This document shows, piece after piece, positions 27,483-49,681 of a stretch of 64,000 nucleotides of DNA. Under the pieces are notes generated by a model, which did not search any database, had not been told where the DNA came from, and saw only the letters and a list, made by a program, of their open reading frames with translations. Each line of letters opens with the position of its first letter. Position 1 is the stretch's first letter. The DNA is taken from positions 1 through 64,000 of the IMG/VR virus record IMGVR_UViG_3300044712_000810; one strand, written 5' to 3'. Made by a program: the position numbers and the translations under genes.

Positions 27483-29021
27483 GTGGCAAGAAAAACAACT
27501 AGCAATATCAAGAAAAAACAAAAGAATTTTATGGATTTCCTTAAGTCAATAACCAAATGGCTTGGAAATAAATCTAGATCAGCAAATCAATTGGATTATC
27601 TTATTAATGCATATGATGTTGATAAGATGGTATTTAAAAGACTTTTGAGTTATGTTTATTCATTTCCTCATTTGATTTACTATTATAATAAATATATGAA
27701 CAAATTATTTGACTATAATAGTATGGATATTAAAGAGTGGATTTATTCATTAGCATTCTTAATTGATGCAAATAATGTCCAACAAAAGAAATTCATGTAT
27801 ATTAAGTCAAATGAATTCAAAGAAGAAACACAAAAACAGATTACTGATTTACTACGTGAATATTTTAATACTGTATATGATCAACAAATGAATGATGAAG
27901 ATCTCGAAGTATACTATCGTCTTTTCAACTTAAATGTTATAAAAGACGAAGATATTATGATGGCAGATAAATTAATAAATAATGAATCTACCATTAAAAT
28001 TGAGCGCGATGATTTTATTGATACTTCACCTGAAGAGGATGATGTGGCAAGAAAACAACCTAGTTTTGAAATCACGAAATTAAGTCAATCATTAATTGAT
28101 TTAAGTAATGAAATTAAGCTCTCTGCCCAAAGTCGGGATGAATGTAAAAGTTGTCCAATGTTTGGTAAACCTATTGTTACATTCGATAGTAATATTGAAG
28201 AACCTGGAGAAGTCGATGTCATTTTCATAGGACTGAATCCGGGGACAGATGAAGCATTAGTTGATAGACCATTTGTTGGAGATTCTGGTAAACAATTAAG
28301 ACGTGAATTGATACATCCAATGACAATGGCAGGAAAGACTTGGACTATATTCAATTCAATATTATGTAGTAGTGCAAACAAAGAAAACATTCCAGAATTT
28401 GATAAAGTCAGTGCAAACTGTAAAGGATTAGTTTGGAATTTGGCCGGAAAGTTTCCAACGAAATTATATATTCCAGTTGGAAGTGATGCATTAGCATTAT
28501 TTGGTATTAAAGATAAGATTACAAAAGCATCCGGAAATGAATATGATATGGGTAATGGAATTAAAGTTATTCCGCTTGTTCATCCATCGGCAGTAGCAAA
28601 AGCTAGAACAAAGATGGAACCAATATATAAAGAATCATGTGAAAAGATTCTAAAATATATGAATATTACAAAACAAGCAATTCAACCAGTTCCACCAAAA
28701 GCGCAAGAAAAGAAACAATATAACAAAGATAACTTTAATATACCAGAACATCTATTAATCAAAGAAGTTACAACAAACTTAACATTCTTTGATGTTAAAG
28801 AATTAAACGCATATAAAGTTCTTATGATATTTATTGATGAAAATGGTGATAAGAAATATTTAATAAAAGATCATCAACTTCCAATTTACATCAAACAAAA
28901 AGAATTTAATGAACTTGATAATATCAATGGCAACTTTGAAGCAATGTCGTTAATCCCAGGTGGAAGACGATATCAAGTAACTAAATTAATCAGAGAAAAA
29001 TTAAACGAGATGAGAGGATAA
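27483..29021 (+). CDS. Multidomain protein with central family-4 uracil-DNA glycosylase domain
   Basis: CKSCPM...VIFIGLNPGTDE...RPFVGDSGKQL...VHPS; the C-terminal ~100 aa resemble the PolB N-terminal domain (FIDENGDK). Confidence 0.75.
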   Translation: MARKTTSNIKKKQKNFMDFLKSITKWLGNKSRSANQLDYLINAYDVDKMVFKRLLSYVYSFPHLIYYYNKYMNKLFDYNSMDIKEWIYSLAFLIDANNVQQKKFMYIKSNEFKEETQKQITDLLREYFNTVYDQQMNDEDLEVYYRLFNLNVIKDEDIMMADKLINNESTIKIERDDFIDTSPEEDDVARKQPSFEITKLSQSLIDLSNEIKLSAQSRDECKSCPMFGKPIVTFDSNIEEPGEVDVIFIGLNPGTDEALVDRPFVGDSGKQLRRELIHPMTMAGKTWTIFNSILCSSANKENIPEFDKVSANCKGLVWNLAGKFPTKLYIPVGSDALALFGIKDKITKASGNEYDMGNGIKVIPLVHPSAVAKARTKMEPIYKESCEKILKYMNITKQAIQPVPPKAQEKKQYNKDNFNIPEHLLIKEVTTNLTFFDVKELNAYKVLMIFIDENGDKKYLIKDHQLPIYIKQKEFNELDNINGNFEAMSLIPGGRRYQVTKLIREKLNEMRG

Positions 29022-29022
29022 T

Positions 29023-29346
29023 ATGAGCACAGTATATAAAAAAGTTGAAACCGATGCAACAGAAGCAGAAAGATCTGTAACTGCAATACAACTCCCAGTA
29101 GATGAATTAGTCAATGGCTATTTTGCTAAATTGAAAGAAGAAGGCATGAATGAAAAGTTAGAACGACTTAAAATGGCTAATGAATACCTTCTTGATGAAA
29201 ATCGCAGACTTACAAATGAACTAAGTAAATTTAAAGTAAAAGCAAATCGTGGATCTATTGGTTTATGGTTAATGAAACATGTTACAGAACTAACTGATAA
29301 AGTTTCTAATAAACTTAAAAACAAATTAAATAAAATGGAGAAATAA
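29023..29346 (+). CDS. Hypothetical coiled-coil protein
   Basis: GAGG RBS, tightly packed. Confidence 0.7.
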   Translation: MSTVYKKVETDATEAERSVTAIQLPVDELVNGYFAKLKEEGMNEKLERLKMANEYLLDENRRLTNELSKFKVKANRGSIGLWLMKHVTELTDKVSNKLKNKLNKMEK

Positions 29347-29347
29347 T

Positions 29348-29884
29348 ATGTCAATCGCTTATAGTAATTGGGTCAATAACAAAAGTTTAAAAACAGCAGA
29401 TGTTCTAATTACAGAAATGATGTATGAAAAAGAACTAATCACTCAACATAATTTTGAACTTAAGAAGATTAATAAACAACTCGAAGATGAAAACATTCGA
29501 ATTAATGCTAGAATTAGTATTGTCGAATCAAAAATTAATAAGTTCATTAGTCAAATGCAAGGTTCTGATAGTTTTAAAAATATAATTTCAATGTTAGAAA
29601 AACAACTTGCTGAAATTCAAAAGATTAAAGAATTTATTGAAACTGGTTTTGACGATATTGATCTCAAATCAGAAGAAGAAAAAGAAGTTATTAAGCGTAG
29701 AACTGCTGGTAGTTTAAAGAAAAAAGCACCAAACATTGATCAAAAGATGACAGAATGTCAAAATGAAATCATTGAAAGTATGCGTCCAGGAATGATGGTA
29801 AGAAATATTGCCACTGGTAAAATGCTTACTATTAATGAGTTTCGTGAACTGTTAGAACAACAGCTCGATAAAATGGATGAGTAA
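29348..29884 (+). CDS. Hypothetical coiled-coil protein
   Basis: GGAG RBS, tightly packed. Confidence 0.7.
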   Translation: MSIAYSNWVNNKSLKTADVLITEMMYEKELITQHNFELKKINKQLEDENIRINARISIVESKINKFISQMQGSDSFKNIISMLEKQLAEIQKIKEFIETGFDDIDLKSEEEKEVIKRRTAGSLKKKAPNIDQKMTECQNEIIESMRPGMMVRNIATGKMLTINEFRELLEQQLDKMDE

Positions 29885-31218
29885 TGTGGGTTTATCTAAA
29901 TAAAGAACACATTGACGAGTATTTAAATAAGTATACGGATTTGGCCGAAGGTTTTAATTCTTATATTTTAGTCGAGACTAAGGACGCCGTGTTTTTACCA
30001 CGACTATTTTATAAAAATTATCCTGATAATAACTTAAAGATTCATTACGGCCAAAAACAGGTAACACCAGAAGAAGTACAATTTAAGTTTACCGGAAAAC
30101 TAAGACCAGATCAAGTTCCAATCGTTAATACAATTATCGATGAATTTAAAAGAACTGGAAAAGTTAATGGTATTATAAAAGCAAGACCTGGAATTGGCAA
30201 AACCGTAATGTCCGTTTATATTGCATCAAAACTTGGTCTAAAACCATGTGTTGTTGTAGATAATGATAATCTGATGAAACAATGGATAAGAGCATTTCTA
30301 GATTTTACAGATTTAGAAATTGGTGATATCGGAATTGGTCGTCAAAAATCATTCGGAATTGATAAGAAAGTATGTATCTTCATGGTTCAAACTTTACTTG
30401 GCCGCATTAAAAAAGACACTACACAAGCTTTCGCAACAGTTGATAGTGGCAGATTCGGAGTAGTATTCTACGACGAAGTTCACAACACAAGCGCATCCGA
30501 GAAATATTCAAAATCTTCCGTTCTCTTTAGAACACTAAACATTCTCGGACTATCTGCCACACCATTTCATTGCGGCCCCGCAGAAATTCTCATGAAGAAC
30601 ACCATTGGTGAAATACTTTATGAAACCAATGTTTATGATCTTAAACCTAAATTTAAATTGATTTATTATAATTCGGGATTAAGTAAATACACATACATGA
30701 TTGGTAAAGTCGGTGACTATTTACGCAAAAAAGCAATGTACAATTCAATTGTGCAAAAGAGTCAAGTATATCTTGATCTCATCACTGACACTACCAAAAA
30801 ACTATTAGAAGAAAAACATAAAACGATGATATTATGCTTTACTGAAAAACAAGTACAAGCAATATCAGAAGCATTAACTAAAGCGGGTATTGAAAACTTA
30901 CGATTCTATGGTAAAGAACGTGAGATTCAATATACTGAAGATGTAATCGTTGCAACCTATTCCTTTTGCGGAAAAGGTTTCGATTATAAAGATCTAAGTG
31001 CATTAATACTCGCATGTCCACTTGCTGGTAAAAAGAGTTTAATACAAAGTTGTGGAAGAATTGTAAGACTAGCAGAAAATAAGATGACTCCAATAGTCAT
31101 AAGTCTAGTTGATCTTTGCTTCCCGACAATGTTTGTTCCTGATATACAGAAACAAAAGAAAATAATCAAAGAAGAATTTAACTGCGACATAGAAGAAATC
31201 AAGTGGGGAATTGAATAA
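29884..31218 (+). CDS. Superfamily 2 DNA helicase (UvsW-like)
   Basis: LRPDQ, ARPGIGKT, YDEVH, LGLSATP, GKGFD, QSCGRIVR. Confidence 0.9.
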   Translation: MWVYLNKEHIDEYLNKYTDLAEGFNSYILVETKDAVFLPRLFYKNYPDNNLKIHYGQKQVTPEEVQFKFTGKLRPDQVPIVNTIIDEFKRTGKVNGIIKARPGIGKTVMSVYIASKLGLKPCVVVDNDNLMKQWIRAFLDFTDLEIGDIGIGRQKSFGIDKKVCIFMVQTLLGRIKKDTTQAFATVDSGRFGVVFYDEVHNTSASEKYSKSSVLFRTLNILGLSATPFHCGPAEILMKNTIGEILYETNVYDLKPKFKLIYYNSGLSKYTYMIGKVGDYLRKKAMYNSIVQKSQVYLDLITDTTKKLLEEKHKTMILCFTEKQVQAISEALTKAGIENLRFYGKEREIQYTEDVIVATYSFCGKGFDYKDLSALILACPLAGKKSLIQSCGRIVRLAENKMTPIVISLVDLCFPTMFVPDIQKQKKIIKEEFNCDIEEIKWGIE

Positions 31219-32575: not shown

Positions 32576-32764
32576 ATGCTAATTACAATTTTAACTGGAA
32601 TCGCAACATTTCTATGGGCATTCTGTGGTGGAATGGGTCTAGCAATAGAAGAAATTGCATTTAAACGAAATATAAGATTAATCGATTATGTTGGTGCATA
32701 TATATGTGGACCGATAGCCCTACTAATAACAGTATTAAGATTGAGAGATAAATACAATGGATGA
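32576..32764 (+). CDS. Small membrane hypothetical protein
   Basis: AAGGAG RBS, two hydrophobic segments. Confidence 0.6.
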   Translation: MLITILTGIATFLWAFCGGMGLAIEEIAFKRNIRLIDYVGAYICGPIALLITVLRLRDKYNG

Positions 32765-33059
32765 ATTAGAAATAGAACAAATAAATGAACAAAAAGAAGA
32801 TCTACAAGAACCACCAAGATTCAAAGTAATATTCTTTAACGATGACTTTACAACAACTGATTTTGTAACTGACGTTGTTCAAAGTGTTTTCAAAAGAACA
32901 ATCGAAGAAGCAGAAAGAATAACAAATGTTATTCATACAACAGGTCATGCAGTTGTCGGAACATATACAAAAGAAATAGCTGAAACAAAAAGAGCACAAG
33001 TAATAAACAAAGCAAGAGCACAGGAGTTCCCGCTTCGGGTTGAATGTGAACTAGATTAA
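32757..33059 (+). CDS. clpS: ATP-dependent Clp protease adaptor
   Basis: EPPRFKVIFFNDDFTTTDFV, IHTTGHAVVGTYTKEIAETK, FPLRVECE. Confidence 0.92.
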   Translation: MDELEIEQINEQKEDLQEPPRFKVIFFNDDFTTTDFVTDVVQSVFKRTIEEAERITNVIHTTGHAVVGTYTKEIAETKRAQVINKARAQEFPLRVECELD

Positions 33060-33072: not shown

Positions 33073-33963
33073 ATGCTTAATGATGGATTTTATAAAAAAG
33101 TTGAAGATCCAAAATATTTAAAAAACATACTTTACGGCGATACAGACTCTTTGTTCCTTTGTATCCCAACTAAAACATCAGCAAAACAAATGTCAATTGA
33201 CGAAATTATTAAAATTTCAAAAGATACTGGTAAGAATATAAATGATTTAATTCAACAGTATATGGTTAAATATTTGTTTCCAAAAGCAAATATTGATCCT
33301 AATTTTAATAAGACTCAATTTAAAAACGAAATGATTATGTCGAGTATCATGTTCCTCGACGTTAAAAAACAGTATGCATATAAACTACTAGTAAAAGAAG
33401 GTGTTGTACTAACAGAACCTGAAACCAAATATACCGGTATTCAGATTGTTAGAACCAATACTGCAAAAATTACTAGTAAACTTTTAAGAGAAATGATTGA
33501 GGATGTTATTCTTAATCCACAAATTACAAGAAAACAACGTATTCCAAAACTTATTGAACTCGTTGATGCAAAACACAAAGTATTTAATGATTTTGCAGAC
33601 GCATGTGATTTTACCGAAATAGGTATTCCATGTAAATGGCAAAAACAAGATCAACATATTATGGGAATGAAATTATATAATTTCATAATGGAGAAAGAGA
33701 CATTTAACTTAGGATCTTCCGGAAGATTCATCTATTGCAAATTTCATGATACTAGAACATTAAATCTTTCCGGTATAGATACTGATAAATTAAACGGTAT
33801 AGTCGTACCATATTCATATGATAAAGATAAACTTCGTGATGCAATGGCTAAATATAAAATCATCATCGATAGACAAACACAATGGGACACACTGTACTCC
33901 AAGACTTGTCAACGCTTAACTGAACTAGTAAAACTGATCGATAAGAGATCAGAAGGGAAGTAA
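33073..33963 (+). CDS. Family-B DNA polymerase, C-terminal part (palm motif C + thumb)
   Basis: ILYGDTDSLF, KKQYAY, KYTGIQIVRTNT. Confidence 0.9.
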   Translation: MLNDGFYKKVEDPKYLKNILYGDTDSLFLCIPTKTSAKQMSIDEIIKISKDTGKNINDLIQQYMVKYLFPKANIDPNFNKTQFKNEMIMSSIMFLDVKKQYAYKLLVKEGVVLTEPETKYTGIQIVRTNTAKITSKLLREMIEDVILNPQITRKQRIPKLIELVDAKHKVFNDFADACDFTEIGIPCKWQKQDQHIMGMKLYNFIMEKETFNLGSSGRFIYCKFHDTRTLNLSGIDTDKLNGIVVPYSYDKDKLRDAMAKYKIIIDRQTQWDTLYSKTCQRLTELVKLIDKRSEGK

Positions 33964-34450: not shown

Positions 34451-34534
34451 GATAAAAATTGAATTTTGTCTTAAGTTATAAAAAAATAGTACCATTGTCG
34501 TCGGGACGGACGGCAATTTTAATAATCTCAAAAA

Positions 34535-35879: not shown

Positions 35880-36317
35880 ATGAAACGCAAAGACAAAGAT
35901 GACTTGAGGCTCATCGTCAAAGACGGTGAGATACATGTGAACGCCGATCTGACCATCCGCATGTTCGACAGAACTCGCGGAGGAAAGGCTGATCCTCTGT
36001 TCCCGCTGTGCGATATCGCACACTGGCTGAACAAGAATCGGCACAGCACACCACAGTTAGCAAGAGCAATCGAACGACTGGCAGAAGATCATCGGTGCAA
36101 GTCCAAAGTGTTCTGTGACAAGAACACAATGGGCATGTACTGCACCAACCTCGCCGGTTTGAAGTTGTTGAATGCGACGGATCACAGCACCGAGGTTTTC
36201 AGTAATCTCCTGCTGAAGATGATGTTGCACTTCGACGCCGATTTCGCCGCGAACTTCAAAGCGGCTGCAGGCATCAACAACAACAAGAGCGGAAAAGTCG
36301 TGCAAATGGCCGGCTAA
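35880..36317 (+). CDS. Hypothetical protein, weak BRO-N-like resemblance, GC-rich codons
   Basis: AAGGAGG RBS; PLFPLCDIAHWL...AIERL...TNLAGLKLL pattern loosely BRO-like. Confidence 0.65.
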   Translation: MKRKDKDDLRLIVKDGEIHVNADLTIRMFDRTRGGKADPLFPLCDIAHWLNKNRHSTPQLARAIERLAEDHRCKSKVFCDKNTMGMYCTNLAGLKLLNATDHSTEVFSNLLLKMMLHFDADFAANFKAAAGINNNKSGKVVQMAG

Positions 36318-36361
36318 CAAGCGGGGGCTTCGGCCCCCGTTTCTACTCATAGGAGAAACAT

Positions 36362-37174
36362 ATGGAAATGCCTTCTGAAGTACAAGACATGGTTGACAAT
36401 CTTCTTAAATTCGATGGCATTGACATTGCCGAAAGGATAACTGGAAAAACATGCAACAACGATGAAGCAACCGAAGCACTTGGTGTTGCATTATCAATTG
36501 AACATAACCATCACAAGAACGAACAACTGAAAAAAATCAATGATACCTACATGGGTATTTCATTTGATGATTTTTTAATAATTGCTAAAAATCTCGGATT
36601 CGAAGCAATCTATGAATACGAATTCGAGTACACATCGCAAGAATACGAGTTCCGCGATGAAAAACAAATCGAGATGTTCAATTACGAACACTCGATACTC
36701 TTGATCGCCAACAGTTTCAGTGGACGGTTAAACCGCGCTGAGATGTATTACAACTGGAAGCCACATGTTTTAAAAGGTACTTTCGGAATTGCGTCGTCCG
36801 GCGGAATGATTTCCAAATACAAAGTGCCACAACACTTAATTGACTTGGATCTCAAAGAAGAAACATACAAATATTTCCGTGGCTATATGCCATGGGATAT
36901 CTGGTGCGGGCATCATGATGTTCGCGAAGCATTTATGTTCAAATTTAACAGATTGCTCGAACATGGTAAGTTTGTCAAGTTATGGTTGGAAAAACCATTT
37001 CTATGGCTTCATGACTATGTCGAACAAACAATATTTGCAGGTTCATATTCAAATGAAAGTGAATACCTGCGTAATAAACTAACACAGATCAATCACATTG
37101 ATCACTGGCCGGATGAAGTTAAGATGAGAGTTATTCCAATAGTCGATCAACGCGACTATTTTCGTCAAGTGTAA
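36362..37174 (+). CDS. Hypothetical protein
   Basis: AGGAG RBS, 270 aa, followed by terminator. Confidence 0.75.
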   Translation: MEMPSEVQDMVDNLLKFDGIDIAERITGKTCNNDEATEALGVALSIEHNHHKNEQLKKINDTYMGISFDDFLIIAKNLGFEAIYEYEFEYTSQEYEFRDEKQIEMFNYEHSILLIANSFSGRLNRAEMYYNWKPHVLKGTFGIASSGGMISKYKVPQHLIDLDLKEETYKYFRGYMPWDIWCGHHDVREAFMFKFNRLLEHGKFVKLWLEKPFLWLHDYVEQTIFAGSYSNESEYLRNKLTQINHIDHWPDEVKMRVIPIVDQRDYFRQV

Positions 37175-40067: not shown

Positions 40068-40085
40068 TTATAATTTGGAGATATT

Positions 40086-40481: not shown

Positions 40482-40494
40482 AATTTCCACTTAT

Positions 40495-40577: not shown

Positions 40578-40583
40578 CTTTTT

Positions 40584-40654
40584 TGTGAGGTATCAGTAAT
40601 AAGTTTCAACGCCCCTTGCACGAGCCTAAAACGCTTATTACACAAGTCCTCACA
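40584..40654 (+). ncRNA. Scaffold RNA unit 8 (Ala UGC anticodon-loop cargo)
   Basis: TGTGAGG/CCTCACA; same inner stem as unit 1; GCCC-CTTGCAC-GAGC. Confidence 0.8.
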
Positions 40655-40671
40655 TTTAAATTTCCAAATTT

Positions 40672-40805
40672 TGGAAGGTATCAAGAAACATCCAACGTTA
40701 ACTCCAAACCGGGGGTTATGGTTCAAGTCCATACATTTTGCCAAATAAGGCAGTGTAATGTAATGTAGCATACCGGTTCAACGCAGTTTCTTAAAAGTCC
40801 TTCCA
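40672..40805 (+). ncRNA. Scaffold RNA unit 9 enclosing a permuted tRNA-Trp-like body
   Basis: TGGAAGG/CCTTCCA; CTCCAAA-CCGG, T arm TATGG-TTCAAGT-CCATA, closed acceptor hairpin, then D arm ATGT/GCAT and CCGGT. Confidence 0.75.
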
Positions 40806-40812
40806 CATTTTT

Positions 40813-40880
40813 TGCGAGGTATTCTTCCAGGATTCAACGATCCTCTAAATCGAAAACGACCCTGGATATCAGTCCTCGCG
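40813..40880 (+). ncRNA. Scaffold RNA unit 10 (CGAT-CCTCTAA-ATCG stem-loop, Arg UCU-like)
   Basis: TGCGAGG/CCTCGCG; TCCAGG/CCTGGA; TTCAACG. Confidence 0.8.
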
Positions 40881-40900
40881 ACTTTTTTAAGGAGAACCAC

Positions 40901-41077
40901 ATGTGTAAAGATGAATGCACTTGCGAAGTCAAGTGTCCAATCTGTCAAGAATTGATAGATAAACATGGTGGATTATATCCAAACCAAGAAACAATCAAAG
41001 CCATCGAAGAAGTTCGAAACGGCAAAACAAAAACATTTAATTCAGTTGAAGAGTTATTTAACGAATTACACAAATAA
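40901..41077 (+). CDS. 58-aa protein: Cys-rich N-terminus plus DinJ/RelB-type C-terminal toxin-binding segment (not in ORF track)
   Basis: AAGGAG RBS; hand translation MCKDECTCEVKCPICQELIDKHGGLYPNQETIKAIEEVRNGKTKTFNSVEELFNELHK; followed by terminator CGGGTC-TTCG-GACCC. Confidence 0.75.
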   Translation: MCKDECTCEVKCPICQELIDKHGGLYPNQETIKAIEEVRNGKTKTFNSVEELFNELHK

Positions 41078-41114
41078 CCGGGTCTTCGGACCCAATTTTT
41101 ATTTTTACCTAAAG

Positions 41115-41126
41115 TCATATAGAAAT
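41115..41126 (+). promoter_or_regulatory. TCATATAGAAAT putative promoter
   Basis: Follows the terminator at ~41079-41100. Confidence 0.65.
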
Positions 41127-41282
41127 AGTACAAATACCGAACTTTTTGTTTTTAATATTTGCAGTTTTTACATAGAAATATTTTATTAGAAGTATTGATT
41201 TATCAATACGACAAGATATGTAGTTCTTTGGATTTTGGCTCTCTCAAGGCGCATATCTTGTTGTTTTACTTTAGGAGGATTC

Positions 41283-41552
41283 ATGTCAATTACGCGTAGA
41301 GAAGTAACAAAAACTGTTATTGAGATGACGGATGTAACTTGTGATATTTGTGGTAAAACATATACTTTTGATGCAGATAAAAAACATGAAAATGATGATT
41401 GGATTGAAACGCAAGAATTTCATTATATAAGTTTTCGAGGCGGCTACGGCTCCATATTTGGAGACGGTGATACTGTAACCTGTGATATCTGTCAACATTG
41501 TTTAAAAGACAAGTTGGGAGAATATCTCAAAATCAATGAGGGAGATCTTTAA
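41283..41552 (+). CDS. Small zinc-finger-like hypothetical protein
   Basis: AGGAGG RBS; CDICG...CDICQHC. Confidence 0.7.
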   Translation: MSITRREVTKTVIEMTDVTCDICGKTYTFDADKKHENDDWIETQEFHYISFRGGYGSIFGDGDTVTCDICQHCLKDKLGEYLKINEGDL

Positions 41553-41645
41553 TTGAAAAAACTAAACCTGCCAGATCCCGGAGTCTAGGTCCTATCAGGA
41601 CAGGACTCCTCTGCGTCCAACAACTCAGATAGGAGATACCGTCCT

Positions 41646-42173
41646 ATGAATTTCGTAATTGTATTAAACGCTAACTACGAAATACACCAGAAGGTTAGCG
41701 TAAAACAATGTCTAAGTATGATCAGGCGTCAAGTTGTTGAAGTTATTAAATACTCTGACAAAGTTATTACTACATGCAAAGAGAAGATTCAAATTCCTCT
41801 TATAGTACGTTTAATAACTGTAGTTAGAAAAGTATTTAAAAACAAGATACAATTCACAAAGAAAAACCTTTTTGTACGCGACCAATACATGTGTGCGTAC
41901 TGTGCCCAAAAATTCGAAAGTAAACAACTTTCGGTCGATCATATCCTTCCGGAATCGAGAGGAGGTCCGACTTCTTGGGAAAACTGTGTAACAGCCTGTG
42001 TCAAGTGTAACAACAAGAAAGACAACAAGACACCAAGAGAAGCCGGAATGTTTCTCAAATTCAAACCATTCGAACCAACCATAGCCGAATTCGTGAAACT
42101 AAAAGTAACACAAGACGGACTTGAAAAGTTTGTTAAAGAAATATTTGACCAACTTATGGACGAATGCAAATAA
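41646..42173 (+). CDS. HNH endonuclease (McrA-like)
   Basis: RDQYMCAYC...VDHILPESRGG...WENCVTACVKCNNKK. Confidence 0.92.
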   Translation: MNFVIVLNANYEIHQKVSVKQCLSMIRRQVVEVIKYSDKVITTCKEKIQIPLIVRLITVVRKVFKNKIQFTKKNLFVRDQYMCAYCAQKFESKQLSVDHILPESRGGPTSWENCVTACVKCNNKKDNKTPREAGMFLKFKPFEPTIAEFVKLKVTQDGLEKFVKEIFDQLMDECK

Positions 42174-42217
42174 CAACGTGGGGGCGAAAGCCCCCATTTT
42201 TAGCTGGAGACAAAATC

Positions 42218-42511
42218 ATGTCAAAAACACTAAGTTTTAACAAACCCGAAGATTCAATTTACATTGATGATGTAAAAAGTGAAGATTTTATAACATGTCA
42301 TAATTATGTATTATGCATACAGGATGACACTAAAAAATATATATGGTTTGATGTAGAATCAGCATCTGTTAGTCCTAGAACATTTAATACTATCGAAGAT
42401 GCCGTAATATTTTTAAAAAATAAACATGTTGATGATGAAGAAAAAGTTCTCGTGCATAATAAGCATGATGAATATTTCAGCGAATTAATAAGAATTATAG
42501 AATCACTATAA
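42218..42511 (+). CDS. Hypothetical protein
   Basis: GGAG RBS before ATG 42218. Confidence 0.65.
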   Translation: MSKTLSFNKPEDSIYIDDVKSEDFITCHNYVLCIQDDTKKYIWFDVESASVSPRTFNTIEDAVIFLKNKHVDDEEKVLVHNKHDEYFSELIRIIESL

Positions 42512-42525
42512 ACTTGGAGTCAACC

Positions 42526-43629
42526 ATGTCGTGTCTGGATAAATGCGCATTTCTTATTCCATATACTCAAATAGAGGCAGGTGCACAAACACAATTGTGC
42601 AACTATTTAAAAGAACCATTTTGCCTCCGCGCAGCTGTAATGCCAGACATCCATACCGGATATGCGTTACCAGTTGGTGCGGTTGTATTGCTCGAAGGAG
42701 TAATATCACCAGCAGCAGTTGGTGTTGATATAGGTTGCGGAATGTGTTGTATTCGTACAGATGTTCCGATCAAACATATCAAAGGAAAAGAAGAAAAACT
42801 ATTTAAACAAATATATTCTACTATTCCAGTTGGATTTGGTAGTCATGCAAAAAAAAGAGACTATCCTGATTTCAAATCAGCAATACTGGATAAAAAACTG
42901 GATGCAGCAATAAATTTAAAATTAAAAGAACAACTTGGAACTCTCGGTGGTGGGAATCACTTTATTGAAATTGGTGAAACACGAGAAGGAAATATAGGAA
43001 TTACTATTCATAGTGGATCACGTAATGCTGGAAAGCAAATATGTGATCATTACTGTGCATTAGCTAAAAAAATTCATACTGAATTAAAAGGTGACTTTCT
43101 ATTCTTCGATCGTGATGAAGGAAAGGCATACTTTCAAGATATGAACTTTATGTTATCATATGCATTAGAAAATCGTTTAAATATGATGGTTGACATTCTT
43201 GATATACTTGGGTTGGATCAAAATCTACTCAAGGAAATCATTAATGAGAATCATAATCATGCCGAAGATCTAGATGGAAAGATTCTGCATCGTAAAGGTG
43301 CAACACCAGCAGCAAAAGACCAATTGGGTGTTATCCCAGGTAATATGCGCGACGGTGTATATATAACTAAAGGTCTTGGCAACGACAAATATCTGTCAAG
43401 TGCAAGTCATGGAGCCGGTCGTAAAGGTTCTAGAACTTGGGCAAAACAAAAAGATACAGTCGAAACATTTGCAAAACTAATGAATGGTATTGTCGCGAAA
43501 GTTGACAAACATACATTGGATGAAGCACCTTGGGCATATAAAAAGATCGAGGATGTAATTAAAGCACAAGAAGGAATTGTGGTTGATATTATCGATCACA
43601 TTAGACCAATCATTAACATCAAAGGATAG
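42526..43629 (+). CDS. rtcB: RtcB 2',3'-cyclic-phosphate/5'-OH RNA ligase
   Basis: MPDIHTG, VGVDIGCG, LGTLGGGNHFIE, IHSGSR, NENHNH, HRKGATP, SASHGAGR, DEAPWAYK. Confidence 0.95.
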   Translation: MSCLDKCAFLIPYTQIEAGAQTQLCNYLKEPFCLRAAVMPDIHTGYALPVGAVVLLEGVISPAAVGVDIGCGMCCIRTDVPIKHIKGKEEKLFKQIYSTIPVGFGSHAKKRDYPDFKSAILDKKLDAAINLKLKEQLGTLGGGNHFIEIGETREGNIGITIHSGSRNAGKQICDHYCALAKKIHTELKGDFLFFDRDEGKAYFQDMNFMLSYALENRLNMMVDILDILGLDQNLLKEIINENHNHAEDLDGKILHRKGATPAAKDQLGVIPGNMRDGVYITKGLGNDKYLSSASHGAGRKGSRTWAKQKDTVETFAKLMNGIVAKVDKHTLDEAPWAYKKIEDVIKAQEGIVVDIIDHIRPIINIKG

Positions 43630-43950: not shown

Positions 43951-45204
43951 ATGAAGAAACTATCGAAATCTAAATTGAAAAATAGGGCATCAAGATTGAA
44001 AGCAGTAGTAGGCAGTCCAATGTCTATTGATATGGAATATTATGAGGACACTGTAAAATATCAAGGAGACAAAATGGATCAGGGCGAAGATCTGAATGTT
44101 GGTCTTACGTTTGGCGCTGACTTCGGTTATCCTGTTTATGGCGTTGTTGCCAAAGGTAAAACTGAAGAACTTCTGCGTCATGCAAACAAGACCGGTCTTT
44201 CCGAACACGAAGAATTCAACATGGTCATTGATGGAAAGAAACGTAGTGACGTATTTGAGATTTTTCGCAAATATGGTCGTTGCATGGACTTCCAAAAAAG
44301 AACTTTCGTCTGTATGGCGGAAGATGCTTACATCGGTGTTAACTTCACCGATCGTGATTCCTATAGTGGAATCTATGTTTCCTTTGACGGAAACGATAAA
44401 AACAAATTGATTGAACTTCGCAATCAAATTTATGCAGAACTTAAAGAATTTAAAAAAGTGTGCATTAACTGTGAAGTCAATTGGTATTATGCCAAAGGAT
44501 GCAATCAAGAACTTCAGTCTCAACAGATTCAGGAAGTTCTTGATGATAATGTTTATCCCGAAGCATATCCTTATATTGAAAATCTTGATGAATTCATCAA
44601 TGATTATCTTGCCGGTGATGAACAAGTTCTCATCTTCCTGGGTCCTCCCGGAACCGGTAAAACTCGTTTGATCCGCTACATTCTTAATCGTATGGTCGTC
44701 AAACAAATTGAAAAACAAGGAGTAGGTCTTAGCCGTTATGGCGATGCCTATTTCGAAGATGACGATGATGTAAATATCATGTATACTACCGATGCGAAAG
44801 TATTGGAACATGAAGAGTTCATTGTGGATTTCCTTACCAATAGGCACTCCGCAATGGTTCTTGAAGATATTGACTTTAACCTTCGTCCTCGCATGGATAA
44901 CAACACTTCCATGTATAAACTTCTTGCCTCCAGTGATGGTCTTCTGACCAACCGTGGACGTAAGATGATTATTAGTACCAACGTTGATAGCGTTGCGAAA
45001 ATCGACGAAGCTCTTATTCGTCCCGGACGTTGCTACGGCATCGTTCAATTCCAGAAACTTAATCCCGAACAGGCAAATACGTTTCTGAAAGTTATTGGCA
45101 GTGACGAAACTGTTACTGTTGAAAAAACCATTGCCGAACTTTACGCTATGAAGAAACATACTCGTAGCGGTTCTGGCAACAATATTCGCAAAATCGGATT
45201 CTAG
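43951..45204 (+). CDS. AAA+ ATPase
   Basis: GPPGTGKT, VLEDID, STN, IDEALIRPGRC. Confidence 0.9.
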   Translation: MKKLSKSKLKNRASRLKAVVGSPMSIDMEYYEDTVKYQGDKMDQGEDLNVGLTFGADFGYPVYGVVAKGKTEELLRHANKTGLSEHEEFNMVIDGKKRSDVFEIFRKYGRCMDFQKRTFVCMAEDAYIGVNFTDRDSYSGIYVSFDGNDKNKLIELRNQIYAELKEFKKVCINCEVNWYYAKGCNQELQSQQIQEVLDDNVYPEAYPYIENLDEFINDYLAGDEQVLIFLGPPGTGKTRLIRYILNRMVVKQIEKQGVGLSRYGDAYFEDDDDVNIMYTTDAKVLEHEEFIVDFLTNRHSAMVLEDIDFNLRPRMDNNTSMYKLLASSDGLLTNRGRKMIISTNVDSVAKIDEALIRPGRCYGIVQFQKLNPEQANTFLKVIGSDETVTVEKTIAELYAMKKHTRSGSGNNIRKIGF

Positions 45205-45250
45205 ATTATAGCGGCCCATATACTGGGCCGCATTTTTATTTTTATATGTT

Positions 45251-45262
45251 TCATATAGAAAT
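45251..45262 (+). promoter_or_regulatory. TCATATAGAAAT putative promoter
   Basis: Follows the terminator GCGGCCCA...TGGGCCGC-ATTTTT. Confidence 0.7.
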
Positions 45263-45284
45263 AATCATGTTATGAGGAGGCATT

Positions 45285-45497
45285 ATGAGAACAATAACCA
45301 TGGAAAATGGAAGCATGTACTATGATGAAGAATTTAATTCACTAATCATAGCCAAAAATCTTGAAAATGGCAATGTTTCCGTTTTTACACCATGTACAGA
45401 CTGGGATATAACGTTTAGGTTAGGGCGTCCACAATTTTTTACAACTGTAATAACACGAGAACAATTTAACACGTACATTAGCATGGAGGACTCATGA
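45285..45497 (+). CDS. Hypothetical protein
   Basis: GAGGAGG RBS; ATGA overlap with the vWA gene. Confidence 0.65.
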   Translation: MRTITMENGSMYYDEEFNSLIIAKNLENGNVSVFTPCTDWDITFRLGRPQFFTTVITREQFNTYISMEDS

Positions 45498-46903
45498 CAG
45501 CAAGAGACTGGATTGACGTTTGCATCTCGTTTGACACAACAGGAAGCATGTATCCCTGCCTGGGCGAAGTTCGCTCCAAGATCACCAAAATGGTGGACAC
45601 CCTGTTTTCGAAGATCCCGAATCTTCGTATCGCAATCATCGCTCATGGCGACTACTGCGATGCAGGCCGTCCTTACACCGTTAAGGTGATGGATTTCACC
45701 AACGAAAAGAACACCATCGTCAACTTCGTGAACAAGGTCGAACCGACCGGCGGCGGTGATGCACCTGAATGCTACGAACTGGTTCTCAAAACTGCGAGAA
45801 CTCTTCTCTCGTGGCGTTCCGGCACCTCCAAGTCCATCGTCATGATTGGCGACGACAATCCGCACGGACCTACCTATCCGCAGAACGTCGACAAGATCGA
45901 CTGGCAGAACGAATGCGGCCTGCTGAAAGAAGCCAACGTCAAGGTCTATGGCATTCATGCCATGCCTGGTTGCCGTCGTCACAGCGAAACCTTTTACAGG
46001 GCAATCGCTGCAAGAACCGAAGGCACCTATCTGACCCTGGACCAGTTCGCAGCGATCGAACAGCTCATTCTCGGCATCTGCTACAAACAGGACAGCGTCG
46101 AGAAACTCAACGAATACGTCGAAGTCATCAAGGTCGGTGCCGGTCGTAGCACCCTGCGTAACATCGCAGCACTCACCGGAACCACCTTCGACGAGGCCGA
46201 CTATTCAAAGAAGCACATGCCCAAGGGCCTCGTGCCGGTTCCTTCCGGCCGCTTCCAGGTCTTCACCGTTCCATCGAAGATGGCAATCAAACAGTTCGTC
46301 GTCGATCGCGGAATCCTTTTCAAGAAGGGCCGTGGCTTCTACGAGCTCACCAAGTCCGAAACCGTCCAGCAGTACAAAGAAGTCATTCTGCAGGACAAGA
46401 TCACTGGCGAATTCTACGCCGGTGCTGCCGCTCGCGAAATGCTCGGCCTGCGCCCGCAGATCGAAGGAACTTCTGGTGGCATCCACGAGAAGCTTCGTCC
46501 TGTCGATCTGGACAAATACCGCGTGTTCATCCAGAGCACCTCGGTAAACCGCGCTCTCGTCGCCGGATCTGGCTTCCTTTACGAAGTCGAAGACTGGGAC
46601 AAGAAGGGAGAGACTCTCGAAGTCAAGGAAACCATTCCTGTCGTGGTCGGAAAAACTGCCAAAGCAACCGCCAAGGCTCCGACCAAGGCGACCACCAAGA
46701 CCCCTGCCAAGGCCCCGGCCAAAAGCAGAACGAAACCCACCGTGGTTCACGCCAAGATCACCGGCTTCGTGGTCAAGATCGAAGACGACGGCAAGATCAA
46801 CATCGCAAACGCCTCCGGCGAAAAGCCTTTCATGACCATCGCCGCCGAACACAACTTGGCATCCGCTCTGCGCAAGATCGCAGAAGTCGGAGAATTCAAG
46901 TAA
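45494..46903 (+). CDS. von Willebrand factor A domain protein with Lys/Ala/Thr-rich linker
   Basis: SFDTTGSM MIDAS, TGGGDAPECYE, MIGDDNPH; GC-rich codons. Confidence 0.85.
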   Translation: MTARDWIDVCISFDTTGSMYPCLGEVRSKITKMVDTLFSKIPNLRIAIIAHGDYCDAGRPYTVKVMDFTNEKNTIVNFVNKVEPTGGGDAPECYELVLKTARTLLSWRSGTSKSIVMIGDDNPHGPTYPQNVDKIDWQNECGLLKEANVKVYGIHAMPGCRRHSETFYRAIAARTEGTYLTLDQFAAIEQLILGICYKQDSVEKLNEYVEVIKVGAGRSTLRNIAALTGTTFDEADYSKKHMPKGLVPVPSGRFQVFTVPSKMAIKQFVVDRGILFKKGRGFYELTKSETVQQYKEVILQDKITGEFYAGAAAREMLGLRPQIEGTSGGIHEKLRPVDLDKYRVFIQSTSVNRALVAGSGFLYEVEDWDKKGETLEVKETIPVVVGKTAKATAKAPTKATTKTPAKAPAKSRTKPTVVHAKITGFVVKIEDDGKINIANASGEKPFMTIAAEHNLASALRKIAEVGEFK

Positions 46904-46951
46904 ACCCAACGGGCGGGCCGAAAGGTCCGCCCAATTTTATTTTCTCTTAAC

Positions 46952-46963
46952 TTATATAGAAAT
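46952..46963 (+). promoter_or_regulatory. TTATATAGAAAT putative promoter
   Basis: Follows the terminator GGGCGGGCC-GAAA-GGTCCGCCC. Confidence 0.65.
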
Positions 46964-46991
46964 AGTACAATAACAAACAAAGGAGGCAAAC

Positions 46992-47468
46992 ATGTCTTTA
47001 AAAGGAGTTGTTCCACCTGTTGAAGTAAGAAACAAGATTATAAGAGCCATTAAACTGGCTCTCATCGTGATTGCCGGAATCTTATCATTCCTTTTAGGAG
47101 TGACATATTCCATCACTCATGCAGCAGTTGCTGACAAAATGTCAAAAAAGTACAACGTTGAACTAACATTGAACAATCTAACTGAAAACATCATCAGGTT
47201 CGAAAAGTCGGACATCGTTCCAAACATCGCAGTAATGCGTAAACAAATTCCGACATTTGACAAGACTTACGAAACCTACATCAAATCGCAACCTGTACAA
47301 AGTCGACTTCGCATGGTCGTTGACTGGATGTTGACGAACTTGTCAGAGTCGCAACTCAAAAAACTAGAAGACCCAAATGAAGATTTTGGCAATATGTTGC
47401 CAAAAAGATTTCAAGAAGAAATCATCGAGATTATTAGCACGGGTCTTCAACTGGCGAAAAACCAATGA
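46992..47468 (+). CDS. Membrane-anchored hypothetical protein
   Basis: AAGGAGG RBS, one TM helix. Confidence 0.7.
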   Translation: MSLKGVVPPVEVRNKIIRAIKLALIVIAGILSFLLGVTYSITHAAVADKMSKKYNVELTLNNLTENIIRFEKSDIVPNIAVMRKQIPTFDKTYETYIKSQPVQSRLRMVVDWMLTNLSESQLKKLEDPNEDFGNMLPKRFQEEIIEIISTGLQLAKNQ

Positions 47469-47578
47469 CAAAAATTAAAGTGGGGGATGGCTTACGTCCC
47501 CCACGCAATTTGATTTCCCTTCTAAAGTTATAAAGAAATAGTTTTATAGTATAAAATCCTTGGGAATTGGGGGTAAGA

Positions 47579-49681
47579 GTGCAACAAATCCAATGTGACG
47601 ATTTAATTGACATGATTAAGTCCGACAAAATTTCTCCCTATCAATTTTATTCTACGGATATTGATTATCCACAGTATTACAGTGTTGAATATTTTTTAAA
47701 TCATCCTCATGATACTATTGAAAAAAATCAAAAGCTTAAAATCCTGTTTTTAGACATCGAAGTTTATATGCAAGGATCTACGAAATTCCCAAAACCAGAA
47801 GAAGGGGAATTTCCAGTAAGCGCAATTACAACATATTTAAATACAAAAAACAAGTTTACATCTTATTTTTTATTATTGAATAAAAACATACAAAAATTTC
47901 CAGTAGAAGATCTTGAAAAACAAAAACAAGATTATTTAAACACACTGTTACAAAATAAATATATAACAGACAAAGATACACTGGAAATTAAAATTTTTAC
48001 GAATGAAACAGAACTGTTAAAAACATTTTGGGAAGATGTAAAAACAGATGATCCAGCATGTTTAACAGGATGGAACAGCGATCAATTCGACTTACCGTAT
48101 CTATATTACAGAACGGTTAATGTATTAAATGGTGATGAAAAACGTGCTCATAAGTTAATGTCTAAATTTGGACAAGTTAAAGTTAGAGCATATGGTGGAA
48201 AAATAGTAATAGATTTTCCAGAATTTATTAATATGGATTTATATTACTTATATAAACCACGAGCAGAAGGTGGACTTGCACAAGGTAAAACTATGGCAAG
48301 TTATTCACTAGATTTCGTGTCAGAACAAATTTTAAAATTAAAGAAATTAGAATATAAAAATGAAGGTATGAGTCTGGATATGTTTTATGAAGCAGATCCA
48401 GTTGGATACTTATTATATAACATAATGGACTGTTGCCTAGTTAATTTACTTAACAATAAACTAGGACACCCAGACCGATATAACATGTTACGTCGTCTTA
48501 TGAAGACACCATTAGGTATTGCACTAAGAGGTCCTTCCGCATTATTTGATACATTCGTTTTACATGAATTGACAAGAAATGGTCAGGGCCCAAGATTTGG
48601 AATACTAGACGAAACAAGTGTAGAAATTCCAGAACATGAGATTAGACAAATACCTACACAAAAAACAAGTAAGAAAATTAAATGGGGAATTACTGAAATT
48701 TCCCAAGAAACTTATAGAGCGATAACTTGTAGATATCCTGGCGCATATGTTAAGGATTCTCCAGGTTTAATTTATGACTTGGATGATGGAATTCTAATTG
48801 ACTTAGATGCAACATCACTGTATCCAAGTATGATCTGTCAATATAATATCAGTTTCGATACATTCCATGGAAGAGTAATTGATCCTATTGTAACTAAATC
48901 ATTAGTAACAATTGATAATATTATTAAATCAAATGGACCAATTGCAGATAATATCTATATTGGTCTTTGTGACATGGCATCAAAATATGTATATAGAGAA
49001 GAATTTACAAATAAAAACGATTATACACAACAAGTGTATTATATCACATGTTATCTTATTAAGAAAATAAAAGAACATGGAAAAGAACTTGATAAGTTAT
49101 TTCATCCAAAAGACTATAAAGATTATATCGTACTTAAACGTTACTTGTTACCACTTATTGACTTACTTGAAGACTTATCATCAAACTCTGAAGAATATAA
49201 TACATTCGCCCATGACTATTTATTAATGGACAAAACTGATCCAGAAGTAAAAAGTTTATTAATAGTTGAAAATATAACGAAACCAACAATATGTGTTAAT
49301 CGTATTTTGGTCGAAGATTTTCCAAATTATCTAAAACAACAAAAACTAGTATTTACTCTAACCGGATGTTTATTCAATGAACACAATGACAAAATAAGTA
49401 TCTTTTATGAATTCCTTACAAACATGAAAAATATGCGCGATCAATATAAAAGAGATCGCGACAGTAATGAAGAAGGAAGCGAAAAGTATCGTTATTTTGA
49501 CATGATGCAGAATGCCACCAAAGTAACAATGAACTCAACATATGGTCTATATGGCATGAGTTTATTCAGATATAGTAATAAATGGTTGGCGAAAACTATT
49601 ACAATTTCCGGAAGATTAACACTAAAACTAGCACAAAGATTATCTGATGTATATATAAGTTCTCTCAAGGAAAATAATTAA
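47579..49681 (+). CDS. Family-B DNA polymerase, N-terminal part (3'-5' exonuclease, motifs A and B)
   Basis: FLDIEV (ExoI), GWNSDQFDLPYL (ExoII), YNIMD (ExoIII), DLDATSLYPS, KVTMNSTYG; lacks YGDTDS. Confidence 0.9.
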   Translation: MQQIQCDDLIDMIKSDKISPYQFYSTDIDYPQYYSVEYFLNHPHDTIEKNQKLKILFLDIEVYMQGSTKFPKPEEGEFPVSAITTYLNTKNKFTSYFLLLNKNIQKFPVEDLEKQKQDYLNTLLQNKYITDKDTLEIKIFTNETELLKTFWEDVKTDDPACLTGWNSDQFDLPYLYYRTVNVLNGDEKRAHKLMSKFGQVKVRAYGGKIVIDFPEFINMDLYYLYKPRAEGGLAQGKTMASYSLDFVSEQILKLKKLEYKNEGMSLDMFYEADPVGYLLYNIMDCCLVNLLNNKLGHPDRYNMLRRLMKTPLGIALRGPSALFDTFVLHELTRNGQGPRFGILDETSVEIPEHEIRQIPTQKTSKKIKWGITEISQETYRAITCRYPGAYVKDSPGLIYDLDDGILIDLDATSLYPSMICQYNISFDTFHGRVIDPIVTKSLVTIDNIIKSNGPIADNIYIGLCDMASKYVYREEFTNKNDYTQQVYYITCYLIKKIKEHGKELDKLFHPKDYKDYIVLKRYLLPLIDLLEDLSSNSEEYNTFAHDYLLMDKTDPEVKSLLIVENITKPTICVNRILVEDFPNYLKQQKLVFTLTGCLFNEHNDKISIFYEFLTNMKNMRDQYKRDRDSNEEGSEKYRYFDMMQNATKVTMNSTYGLYGMSLFRYSNKWLAKTITISGRLTLKLAQRLSDVYISSLKENN

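Follow-up and report, generated by a model that had tools for sequence, protein, structure and literature searches.

The first 64 kb of the virus record IMGVR_UViG_3300044712_000810 in IMG/VR, a 314,837-bp sequence with direct terminal repeats that is rated complete, contain three separate genes whose products would together make up a replicative family-B DNA polymerase (PolB). This 64,000-nucleotide stretch is referred to below as the window, and the three genes, encoding chain 1 (27483-29021), chain 2 (47579-49681) and chain 3 (33073-33963), sit within a replication module. The polymerase is proposed, with a probability of about 0.78, to be a non-covalent assembly of the three products, in which its N-terminal sub-domain is carried by a uracil-DNA glycosylase (UDG) protein and in which the UDG, tethered in this way, probably inspects uracil. 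The three pieces are present and complementary, each is conserved with the same boundaries among its own relatives, and relatives exist in which UDG and PolB form one chain. Four independent lines support the predicted assembly, namely the complementarity of the pieces, a modelled complex, the one-chain (Rosetta-stone) relatives and conservation; a three-chain polymerase with its N-terminal sub-domain on the UDG protein had been suggested in an initial annotation of the window, and the same four lines speak for it.

Chain 1 would consist of an N-domain, the UDG domain, a flexible linker of about 25-35 residues and a 94-residue tail equivalent to the sub-domain formed by residues 1 to about 60 of gp43, the T4/RB69 polymerase, followed by a helix. 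Chain 2, the big polymerase piece, would supply the remainder of the N-terminal domain, the 3'-5' exonuclease, palm motif A, the fingers and motif B, and chain 3, the small piece, palm motif C and the thumb. The tail would complete the N-terminal domain by packing on residues ~5-58 and 310-346 of the big piece, with its terminal helix zipping onto the first helix of that chain. Since part of the polymerase fold would reside on the UDG protein, a complete N-terminal domain would include chain 1. The most likely origin of the arrangement is an ancestral UDG-PolB in one chain that underwent fission.

The two polymerase pieces

The big piece, 700 amino acids (aa) long when read from a GTG codon (47579..49681, plus strand), was identified by Pfam and by alignment with RB69 gp43. 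It contains the second half of the N-terminal domain, ExoI-III, palm motif A, the fingers and motif B, and ends just before motif C. Pfam DNA_pol_B_exo1 matches aa 39-232 (E 4e-17; 62.8 bits against a cut-off of 23) and DNA_pol_B matches aa 595-692 above its cut-off (E 3e-15; profile positions 102-198), and the alignment to RB69 covers residues 105-331, 390-433 (motif A) and 556-606 (motif B). The exonuclease motifs Exo I (DxE), Exo II (NxxxFD) and Exo III (YxxxD) are present as FLDIEV, WNSDQFDLPY and YNIMD, and the family-B motifs are divided between the pieces, with A (DxxSLYPS) and B (KxxxNSxYG) in the big piece and C (YGDTDS) and KKxY in the small one. The likeliest start is GTG 47579, since it has a Shine-Dalgarno-like GGGGG 6 nt in front of it and corresponds to the residue with which homologues begin; the alternatives are an upstream TTG at 47567 and the ATG at 47612 chosen by the gene caller.

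ExoI is preceded by about 56 residues in the big piece and by 113 in RB69, and residue 54 of the frame read from the TTG pairs with RB69 residue 105. About 55 N-terminal residues of gp43-type enzymes, corresponding to the first beta strands of the N-terminal domain, are therefore absent from the big piece. The earlier remark that this piece starts almost at ExoI is slightly overstated. The small piece (296 aa; 33073..33963, plus strand) was identified in the same two ways and contains palm motif C, the KKxY motif and the thumb. It matches DNA_pol_B above cut-off at profile positions 218-345, with YGDTDS at aa 21-26 and a KKxYA stretch (KKQYA) aligned to RB69 701-753. It lies 13.6 kb 5' of the big piece on the same strand, so that the C-terminal part comes first; the split into pieces some 14 kb apart and in reversed order, as initially annotated, is borne out by both the Pfam matches and the RB69 alignments. 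Gaps of 4 and 13.6 kb separate the UDG gene, the small piece and the big piece, which are spread over 22 kb.

Matches to PolB in the 314,837-bp genome are confined to these loci, and searches of the genome for PolA and the alpha subunit of Pol III gave no match, which makes this polymerase the sole detectable replicase of the phage. A complete gp43 N-terminal domain (residues 1-108 plus 340-382) occurs in no single chain, and its completion in trans by the tail of the UDG protein is predicted. Rejoining of the pieces by intein trans-splicing or by intron removal was considered and rejected, as the junctions show no intein or intron signatures and the gene order is permuted. No Pfam intein match was found in the three chains; with regard to intein fragments, the small piece has only 20 residues before YGDTDS and the tail of the UDG protein ends in a helix.

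At E <= 1e-10 a word search gave 313 big-piece homologues. Of the 120 listed, the majority are about 650-735 aa long, the rest being either shorter fragments or intein-bearing proteins of 849-1076 aa, and the 11 that were aligned share the same two ends, with about 45-50 residues before ExoI and about 35 after motif B. Complete intein domains (PF14890) lie inside P0021, P0082, P0090, P0096, P0101, P0112, P0114, P0117 and P0128, the homologues of 849-1076 aa, and in the related record G004 (L015) the small-piece homologue lies within a 675-aa open frame. Judging by these sequences, this polymerase lineage is a frequent target of mobile insertions.

The UDG-tail protein

The UDG-tail protein (512 aa; 27483..29021, plus strand) consists of an N-domain, a family-4-like UDG with a putative iron-sulphur (Fe-S) cluster, a linker and a 94-aa tail. 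AlphaFold2 (AF2), run with 8 homologues, gave a helical N-domain of low confidence, a confident UDG core, a disordered linker and a folded tail. The N-domain (aa 1 to ~200; 27483..28082) carries a conserved P-x6-N-x3-N motif formed by P62, N69 and N73. Searches of Pfam, PHROG and Atlas features yielded no assignment for it, and comparison with Atlas structures was uninformative (TM <= 0.36). Among 112 relatives, 91 retain R53, 98 retain P62 and 109 retain N73; these counts, like the other residue counts over the 112 relatives, are based on an alignment that may include some misaligned rows.

The UDG domain (aa ~213-395; 28119..28667) contains C221, C224, C295 and C313, predicted from sequence to be the ligands of a 4Fe-4S cluster, together with motif A (GLNPG), motif B (HPSAV), the Phe of PFVG and the Asn before the third Cys. 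Pfam UDG matches aa 243-388 (E 5.5e-12; 46.4 bits against a cut-off of 24.3), the best-matching PDB sequences are those of the family-4 structures 1l9g, 1vk2 and 1ui0 (E ~1e-11), and Foldseek matches the domain to 1l9g (E 3e-10, TM 0.77 by target). With the whole chain-1 model Foldseek returned only UDGs; the phiLo polymerase 9qhs_A was among the structural and sequence matches of chain 1. The linker (aa ~396-418; 28668..28736) is poorly conserved and predicted to be disordered, with a predicted local distance difference test score (pLDDT) below 50 for residues 398-418 and with both length and sequence varying among homologues.

The tail and its predicted docking

The tail (aa 419-512 plus stop; 28737..29021, plus strand) is read as the N-terminal beta sub-domain of a family-B polymerase followed by a terminal helix. 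Modelled alone by AF2, it reaches a pLDDT of 90.7 and forms four strands, a short helix, a fifth strand and a helix of 19 residues. A Foldseek search of the whole PDB put T4/RB69 gp43 in nearly all top places (best 9ea3_A, E 0.044, probability 0.99, TMq 0.51), and VIA-align superposed residues 13-90 of the tail model on gp43 1-80, with 75 residues aligned at a root-mean-square deviation of 4.5 and a Z of 3.7.

The predicted complex of the tail with residues 1-400 of the big piece reached an ipSAE of 0.89, while the highest of 3 controls had 0.01; among 80 solved complexes 58 attain the calibration mark for this score, as do 2 of 110 mismatched pairs. The docking of the C-terminal domain of the UDG protein on the exonuclease chain, which the initial annotation had implied, was thereby recovered in the prediction. 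Runs agreed on at least 92% of contacts, of which there were 184-192, with a partner pLDDT of at least 83. Residues 5-58, 162-164, 196-221 and 310-346 of the big piece are contacted. According to the RB69 alignment, 5-58 and 310-346 are equivalent to gp43 ~58-108 and 340-382, and these two segments together with gp43 1 to ~60 make up the gp43 N-terminal domain, so that the tail contacts fall on the expected complementary segments.

One-chain and intermediate relatives

Scans of IMG/VR with chain 1 or chain 2 as single proteins, or with a 4-row alignment, gave no relatives. A scan with the big-piece alignment recovered distant relatives with 23-30% identity, whose frames extend about 285-340 residues upstream of the match. 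At 10 IMG/VR loci (L016, L019, L024, L033, L044, L045, L046, L047, L048 and L050) these are PolB frames with a UDG at the N-terminus, 8 of them complete open reading frames (ORFs) of 1078-1121 aa. In L016, for example, a 1088-aa ORF contains Pfam UDG at 34-179, the exonuclease at 323-491 and the polymerase at 571-979. Residues 215-366 of the UDG protein match L016 5-168 (E 8e-8), residues 28-697 of the big piece match 303-786 (E 1e-32), and residues 21-217 of the small piece match 811-1005 (E 1e-16). From this co-linearity, residues ~215-302 of L016 are the counterpart of the tail and the first residues of the big piece. The tail profile built on 8 tails matched the segment directly after the UDG in 9 fused or intermediate proteins with an hhalign probability of 70% (E 4e-5), and with 112 tails the match to this segment, between UDG and ExoI, rose to 93% (E 2.5e-7).

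An intermediate form is found at L017/L018, where a 1006-aa ORF combining N-domain, UDG and PolB up to motif B is directly followed by a 318-aa ORF that begins with motif C. The N-domain of the window protein matches the N-terminus of the L017 1006-aa ORF (hhalign 96%, E 2.7e-9). In a quick maximum-likelihood tree of 30 sequences and 534 columns, rooted on T4-like enzymes, the UDG-associated PolBs all form one group (SH-aLRT 100), within which the tripartite forms constitute one clade on a long stem (99) and the fused forms plus the intermediate its sister clade (98). The simplest and most likely reading of these sequences would be an ancestral UDG-PolB, followed by one fission of the N-terminal domain on the tripartite stem. 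Compared with fused or T4-like enzymes, the big pieces of tripartite forms have about 180 extra residues between ExoI and motif B, and the distance from the conserved D-x2-G-x-K of the tail to ExoI exceeds that in fused forms or RB69 by about 25-35 residues. The latter would fit an added pair of helices at the junction.

Distribution of the three-piece architecture

A full HMMER search of 1.84 billion representatives (clusters at 50% identity) with a profile of 10 tails gave 147 proteins at E <= 1e-3, of which about 120 are 430-590 aa long with the tail at the extreme C-terminus. Five of 8 sampled full-length tail relatives (443-582 aa) pass Pfam UDG. Long matches with multiple stretches were set aside as unrelated repeat proteins, and a short match that might have been a stand-alone tail proved to be a contig-end fragment. 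There is no canonical PolB of about 900 aa among the 147 matches, in keeping with the finding, described below, that the tail and T4-like N-termini are not similar in sequence. Among 5 related IMG/VR records, G001 (285 kb) and G004 (109 kb) contain all three pieces; in the other 3 the search found no tail match. In the window, G004 (L053), L005, L007 and L056 the UDG-tail gene is followed by the same ResIII helicase gene.

At L056 (1320-1634) and L057 (879-1193) the tail is a separate 104-aa ORF with a 17-nt overlap with an upstream 394-aa ORF, for which no Pfam UDG match is on record, and the usual ResIII helicase comes next; either a frameshift or a further (fourth) fission would account for this. 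The record G003/L013 (IMGVR_UViG_3300025605_000001; 29,339 bp, rated complete, direct terminal repeats) carries a big piece at 48% identity, and neither tail nor small piece was detected in it. Either a piece of a jumbo-phage genome was wrongly circularised here, or the record is something unusual.

Role of the UDG domain and alternative explanations

The UDG module would sit on a short tether beside the domain that lines the entry path of the single-stranded template. In this phage it probably inspects or binds template uracil, and may excise it, before the template is copied; in relatives with degenerate active sites it could serve solely as a DNA-binding or scaffolding subunit. The copy in the window keeps N252, F264 (PFVG), N291 and H367 (HPS) along with all four cysteines. 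Structures of UDG-PolA enzymes have shown read-ahead excision of uracil by a polymerase-fused UDG, and the same has been proposed for the mpox holoenzyme (PMC13697223). The UDG-tail protein is the only UDG of the genome, which also encodes an ATP-dependent DNA ligase at ~259.5 kb and ThyX, without a classical thymidylate synthase; a search for dUTPase in the genome found none that was convincing. A genome of uracil-containing DNA was considered and dropped, since thymine DNA is expected where ThyX is present.

A number of observations weigh against the proposed assembly, or against parts of it, and are brought together here. As regards the UDG, NCBIfam TIGR00758 UDG_fam4 scores 42.2 bits, below its cut-off of 125.3, and motif A reads GLNPG, the family-4 form being GE[AG]PG. 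Its Asn resembles that of the G[IM]NPG motif of UDG families 2 and 3 and stands at the position of the catalytic Asn or Asp of other UDG families. The initial designation as a family-4 UDG agrees with the Pfam UDG match and with 1l9g, 1vk2 and 1ui0 as the closest structures, and is reduced to 'family-4-like', rather than a certified member, by the UDG_fam4 score. With respect to activity, N252 is kept in 64 of the 112 relatives and H367 in 61; all four active-site positions checked are kept in 51, N252 and H367 are both lost in 41, and one of the two is lost in 17. Glycosylase activity is therefore not a conserved feature, and a conserved role of catalysis is doubtful. PolX and an ExoIII-type apurinic/apyrimidinic (AP) endonuclease were not found in the genome, and a blocking abasic site would result if uracil were excised from a single-stranded template. 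The earlier statement that the polymerase carries the UDG to the fork is conjectural; what is conserved is the tethering.

An alternative keeps the assembly and gives the UDG-fold module a chiefly structural, DNA-handling or processivity function, in which it would grip the template strand or provide, through the N-domain, a platform for other replisome proteins, with uracil excision dispensable. We consider this possible, if on balance doubtful. The Fe-S cysteines (kept in 111-112 of the 112 relatives), the tail residues K457 (110) and Y459 (103) and N73 of the N-domain are near-invariant, and the losses of N252 and H367 are correlated, which speaks for such a subunit; the conserved features, as far as the alignment goes, are the Fe-S UDG fold, the N-domain motif and the tethering tail, and not catalysis. 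The failure to find PolX or the AP endonuclease points the same way. Likewise, no sliding clamp was matched in the 315-kb genome by gp45-N, beta-clamp-N or PCNA-N, although these are three Pfam N-terminal models only. A processivity role has been proposed for the UDG domains of PolA enzymes (PMC3201878, PMC10201439), and the poxvirus UDG is part of a PolB holoenzyme (PMC5682278, PMC13697223); the inactive UDG domains of N4-like PolA and the poxvirus UDG have both been assigned a function of this structural kind in proposals. On the other hand, every catalytic-type or uracil-recognition residue checked is retained in the window copy and in 51 relatives, and an RFC/Rad17-like candidate clamp loader (18339-19346) argues for a divergent clamp, so that an extra processivity factor is perhaps not needed. 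For the same reason the idea of a clamp-less replicase was dropped as support. The mixture of intact and degenerate sites among the 112 relatives mirrors the active SP15-like and inactive N4-like UDG-PolA enzymes (PMC13697223, PMC10201439).

Taken a step further, the break in the N-terminal domain might have evolved as a device by which, throughout a large clade of jumbo phages, the replicase cannot do without a stoichiometric Fe-S protein of UDG fold. Roughly one third of the clade has lost the catalytic residues of this protein, which would then act as a template sensor or grip and as a docking platform through its N-domain, for example for the UvsW-like helicase encoded next to the UDG gene. 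This is speculative and rather unlikely; if true, it would provide a phage counterpart of the UDG-containing poxvirus holoenzyme reached by a different structural route.

As regards the tail, its sequence shows no significant similarity to known T4-like or PDB PolB N-termini. An hmmsearch of the PDB with a profile of 8 tails returned nothing at E <= 10, and hhalign of the tail against four T4-like gp43 N-termini gave a probability of 0.25%, or 0.6% with the 112-sequence profile; the likeness between the tail sequence and the T4 gp43 N-terminus noted in the initial annotation, which had correctly given the C-terminal peptide of the protein, is hence not significant, although homology of the tail to the PolB N-terminus is upheld by complementarity, docking, one-chain relatives and conservation. 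PHROGs and Pfam also gave no match to the tail, and the corresponding N-segment of the fused forms matched T4-like sequences in hhalign at ExoI only. In structure, gp43 scores a Z of 3.3-3.7, which is weak and is equalled by generic beta-meanders of about 35 residues. In a wide search independent of Foldseek (Z <= 4.2) gp43 ranked 32nd, being nevertheless the sole match that covered the whole tail model. A PolB-like fold of the C-terminal domain, also anticipated, is accordingly favoured by coverage and left weak by Z, and fold similarity alone, itself drawn from models, would not carry the assignment. Finally, the complex prediction took in the tail and residues 1-400 of the big piece only, and its score is the confidence of the model itself, which PolB folds that it has learnt could have influenced; resemblance to an intact PolB, the possible bias named here, is just what is being asked.

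The absence of a significant sequence match and the unremarkable Z would also suit a tail that is a small beta domain without relation to PolB, belonging to a repair glycosylase that acts alone, and a polymerase of two chains whose N-terminal domain is naturally short. This is very improbable, because a homologous segment lies exactly between UDG and ExoI in the one-chain relatives, the predicted docking of the tail scores far above controls with contacts on the expected complementary segments, and the ~55 residues absent from the big piece are present in every gp43-type enzyme compared; in addition, the tail is always C-terminal, and G001 and G004 have both the tail and the split polymerase pieces.

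The polarity of fission within the three-product assembly rests on the quick 30-sequence tree with its T4-like root, and the intermediate shares an N-domain and a C-terminal break with the tripartite forms, yet groups provisionally with the fused ones, so that one C-terminal fission or more than one may have occurred. That the pieces are non-functional remnants of a decaying or mis-assembled polymerase gene has almost no chance of being right: they are dispersed over 22 kb in permuted order, with G+C-richer cassettes and HNH and PD-(D/E)XK endonuclease genes between them, but all catalytic motifs are intact, boundaries are identical in aligned homologues, which come from many samples, the junctions lack intein or intron signatures, and no other polymerase was detected in the genome, which is complete and has terminal repeats.

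Comparison with known systems

The closest tblastn matches to the polymerase are T4-like gp43 proteins with 24-28% identity, and there is no close cultured phage. The T4/RB69 gp43 belongs to the same enzyme family, with Exo I-III, motifs A, B and C and KKxY also present here and best matches at 25-28% identity. A natural split into separate chains has a precedent in the two-gene 43A/43B polymerases of some T4-related phages, such as Acinetobacter phage Ac42 with its '43A split DNA polymerase'; these consist of two chains from adjacent genes, in contrast to the three dispersed over 22 kb and permuted here. Ac42 43A is 502 aa long and breaks earlier, whereas the break here follows motif B and the 700-aa piece also lacks ~55 N-terminal residues. 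What sets the present case apart from gp43 and 43A/43B is the extra break inside the N-terminal domain, with the N-terminal fragment fused to another protein.

Template uracil is sensed by archaeal family-B polymerases in a pocket of the N-terminal domain (read-ahead), whereupon the enzyme stalls. Uracil surveillance would thus take place at the same domain that is predicted to tether the UDG here, although the archaeal pocket lies within the N-terminal domain and the phage module is a separate, appended domain of glycosylase fold.

In the chimallivirus PhiKZ the family-B polymerase consists of DNAP-N and DNAP-C with the accessory subunit Rhc (PMC13648687). It resembles the present system as a jumbo-phage PolB made of separately encoded chains, which in PhiKZ form a stable complex, and in holding an accessory domain, the RNase H of Rhc, near the incoming template (PMC13648687). 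It differs in belonging to another, highly divergent PolB clade with two core chains and no UDG, and in that Rhc binds transiently and carries no part of the polymerase fold, unlike the UDG protein as proposed here.

Phage UDG-PolA fusions are known from the SP15-like YerA41/phiLo, from SPO1, from N4-like phages and from T5 (PMC13697223, PMC10201439, PMC3201878). They likewise join a family-4-type UDG domain physically to a replicative polymerase, and since the N4-like enzymes have lost catalytic residues they show the same dichotomy of active and inactive forms. They are single-chain family-A enzymes, whereas here the polymerase is of family B and would be linked by the splitting of its own N-terminal domain. 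The poxvirus holoenzyme combines a family-B polymerase with the A20/A22 bridge and the D4/E4 UDG, and in herpesviruses UNG associates with the polymerase (PMC5682278, PMC13697223). The poxvirus UDG, too, is stoichiometric in a family-B replicase, contacts the template ahead of the active site and has a role beyond repair; it is a family-1 enzyme encoded in trans and held by a bridging protein, whereas the family-4-like Fe-S UDG here would be attached by way of a fragment of the polymerase fold. The two arrangements are not taken to share a common origin. The nearest system is the one-chain UDG-PolB of uncultivated phages, a sister clade with the same UDG type N-terminal to the same PolB lineage, which differs in being a single polypeptide without the ~200-aa N-domain and in being ~180 residues shorter between ExoI and motif B.

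Split family-B polymerases (T4-related 43A/43B; PhiKZ, PMC13648687) and polymerase-attached UDGs (phage PolA fusions; poxvirus and herpesvirus PolB partners) are therefore known already. A literature search, itself incomplete, found no paper with the term 'UDG-PolB' and none naming the one-chain or three-chain form. Apparently new are the covalent phage UDG-PolB lineage, the third break inside the N-terminal domain, the attachment of a UDG through a fragment of the polymerase fold, and the dispersal and permutation of the three genes; no description of any of these was found. Repair and replication would here be coupled by a piece of the polymerase fold that has moved onto an accessory protein, a route different from plain fusion and from the use of a docking motif, and the N-terminal domain of the polymerase would be complete only with the UDG protein bound. 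Three themes, the UDG-PolA fusions of phages, the UDG subunit of the poxvirus PolB and uracil read-ahead in archaeal PolB, would be joined in this system, with phage polymerases of family B added to them.

The forms in one chain, in two adjacent genes and in three dispersed genes constitute a natural series that may be useful for studying how far an essential enzyme tolerates fission. For annotation, about 120 clusters of ~500-aa 'uracil-DNA glycosylases' would be polymerase subunits, and more than 300 'N-truncated' PolBs of ~700 aa would not be defective. Intact and degenerate active sites provide a ready comparison for the catalytic and structural roles of a polymerase-bound UDG.

Genome setting

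The replication module surrounding the three genes includes topoisomerase II subunit A (15947-17386), the RFC/Rad17-like AAA+ ATPase (18339-19346), a GyrB-like subunit (21579-23408), the ResIII/SNF2 helicase (29884-31218) and, by sequence reading, a probable single-stranded DNA-binding protein (SSB; 50482-50853). Directly 3' of the polymerase and the probable SSB gene are a FolE2-type GTP cyclohydrolase I (50828-51628, E 2e-79) and ThyX (52507-53100, E 5e-65). A homologue of the ClpS adaptor (32757-33059, Pfam E 8e-28) lies 13 nt 5' of the small polymerase piece. The start of a 242-aa ORF (49681-50409) overlaps the final base of the stop codon of the big piece; it is a candidate accessory protein, and Pfam and PHROG searches gave no match to it.

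The G+C content of the window is about 30-33%, with three richer islands of 42-44% at 26000-28000, 36000-40000 and 44000-48000. They look like acquired cassettes, and two fall between the polymerase pieces. Their genes include a 490-aa ORF without Pfam match (25910-27382), a Ro60/TROVE protein (37360-38982), an AAA ATPase (43951-45204) and a VWA protein (45494-46903). The Ro60 protein, with its TROVE and Ro60 vWA domains, opens a cluster of RNA-repair type (37360-43629) composed further of tRNA-Met, tRNA-Asp and tRNA-Tyr (39348-40067), a PD-(D/E)XK_5 endonuclease (40086-40481), an HNH endonuclease (41646-42173) and an RtcB ligase (42514-43629); in the gap at 38983-39347 Rfam reported no Y-RNA-like family at gathering thresholds. 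A tRNA-Thr(CGT) of 96 nt called by ARAGORN on the minus strand (57729-57824) had no Rfam tRNA match at gathering score, and may be a false call or a tRNA with an insert.

Two of the three polymerase genes share an upstream element, in which a G+C-rich hairpin is followed, after about 15 nt, by a 14-base promoter-like motif, TTCTAAnGTTATAAA, that has only 2 exact copies within the window. Upstream of the UDG-tail gene, as read directly from the plus strand, the hairpin GGGGGAC-TTCG-GTCCCCC (27390-27407) precedes TTCTAATGTTATAAA (27423-27437), and upstream of the big polymerase piece, on the same strand, a hairpin at 47480-47504 precedes TTCTAAAGTTATAAA (47520-47534). The combination is possibly a class of phage promoter, and the identical motif 5' of chains 1 and 2 suggests co-regulation. 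A weaker copy with 2 mismatches (34468-34482) precedes a tRNA-Asn.

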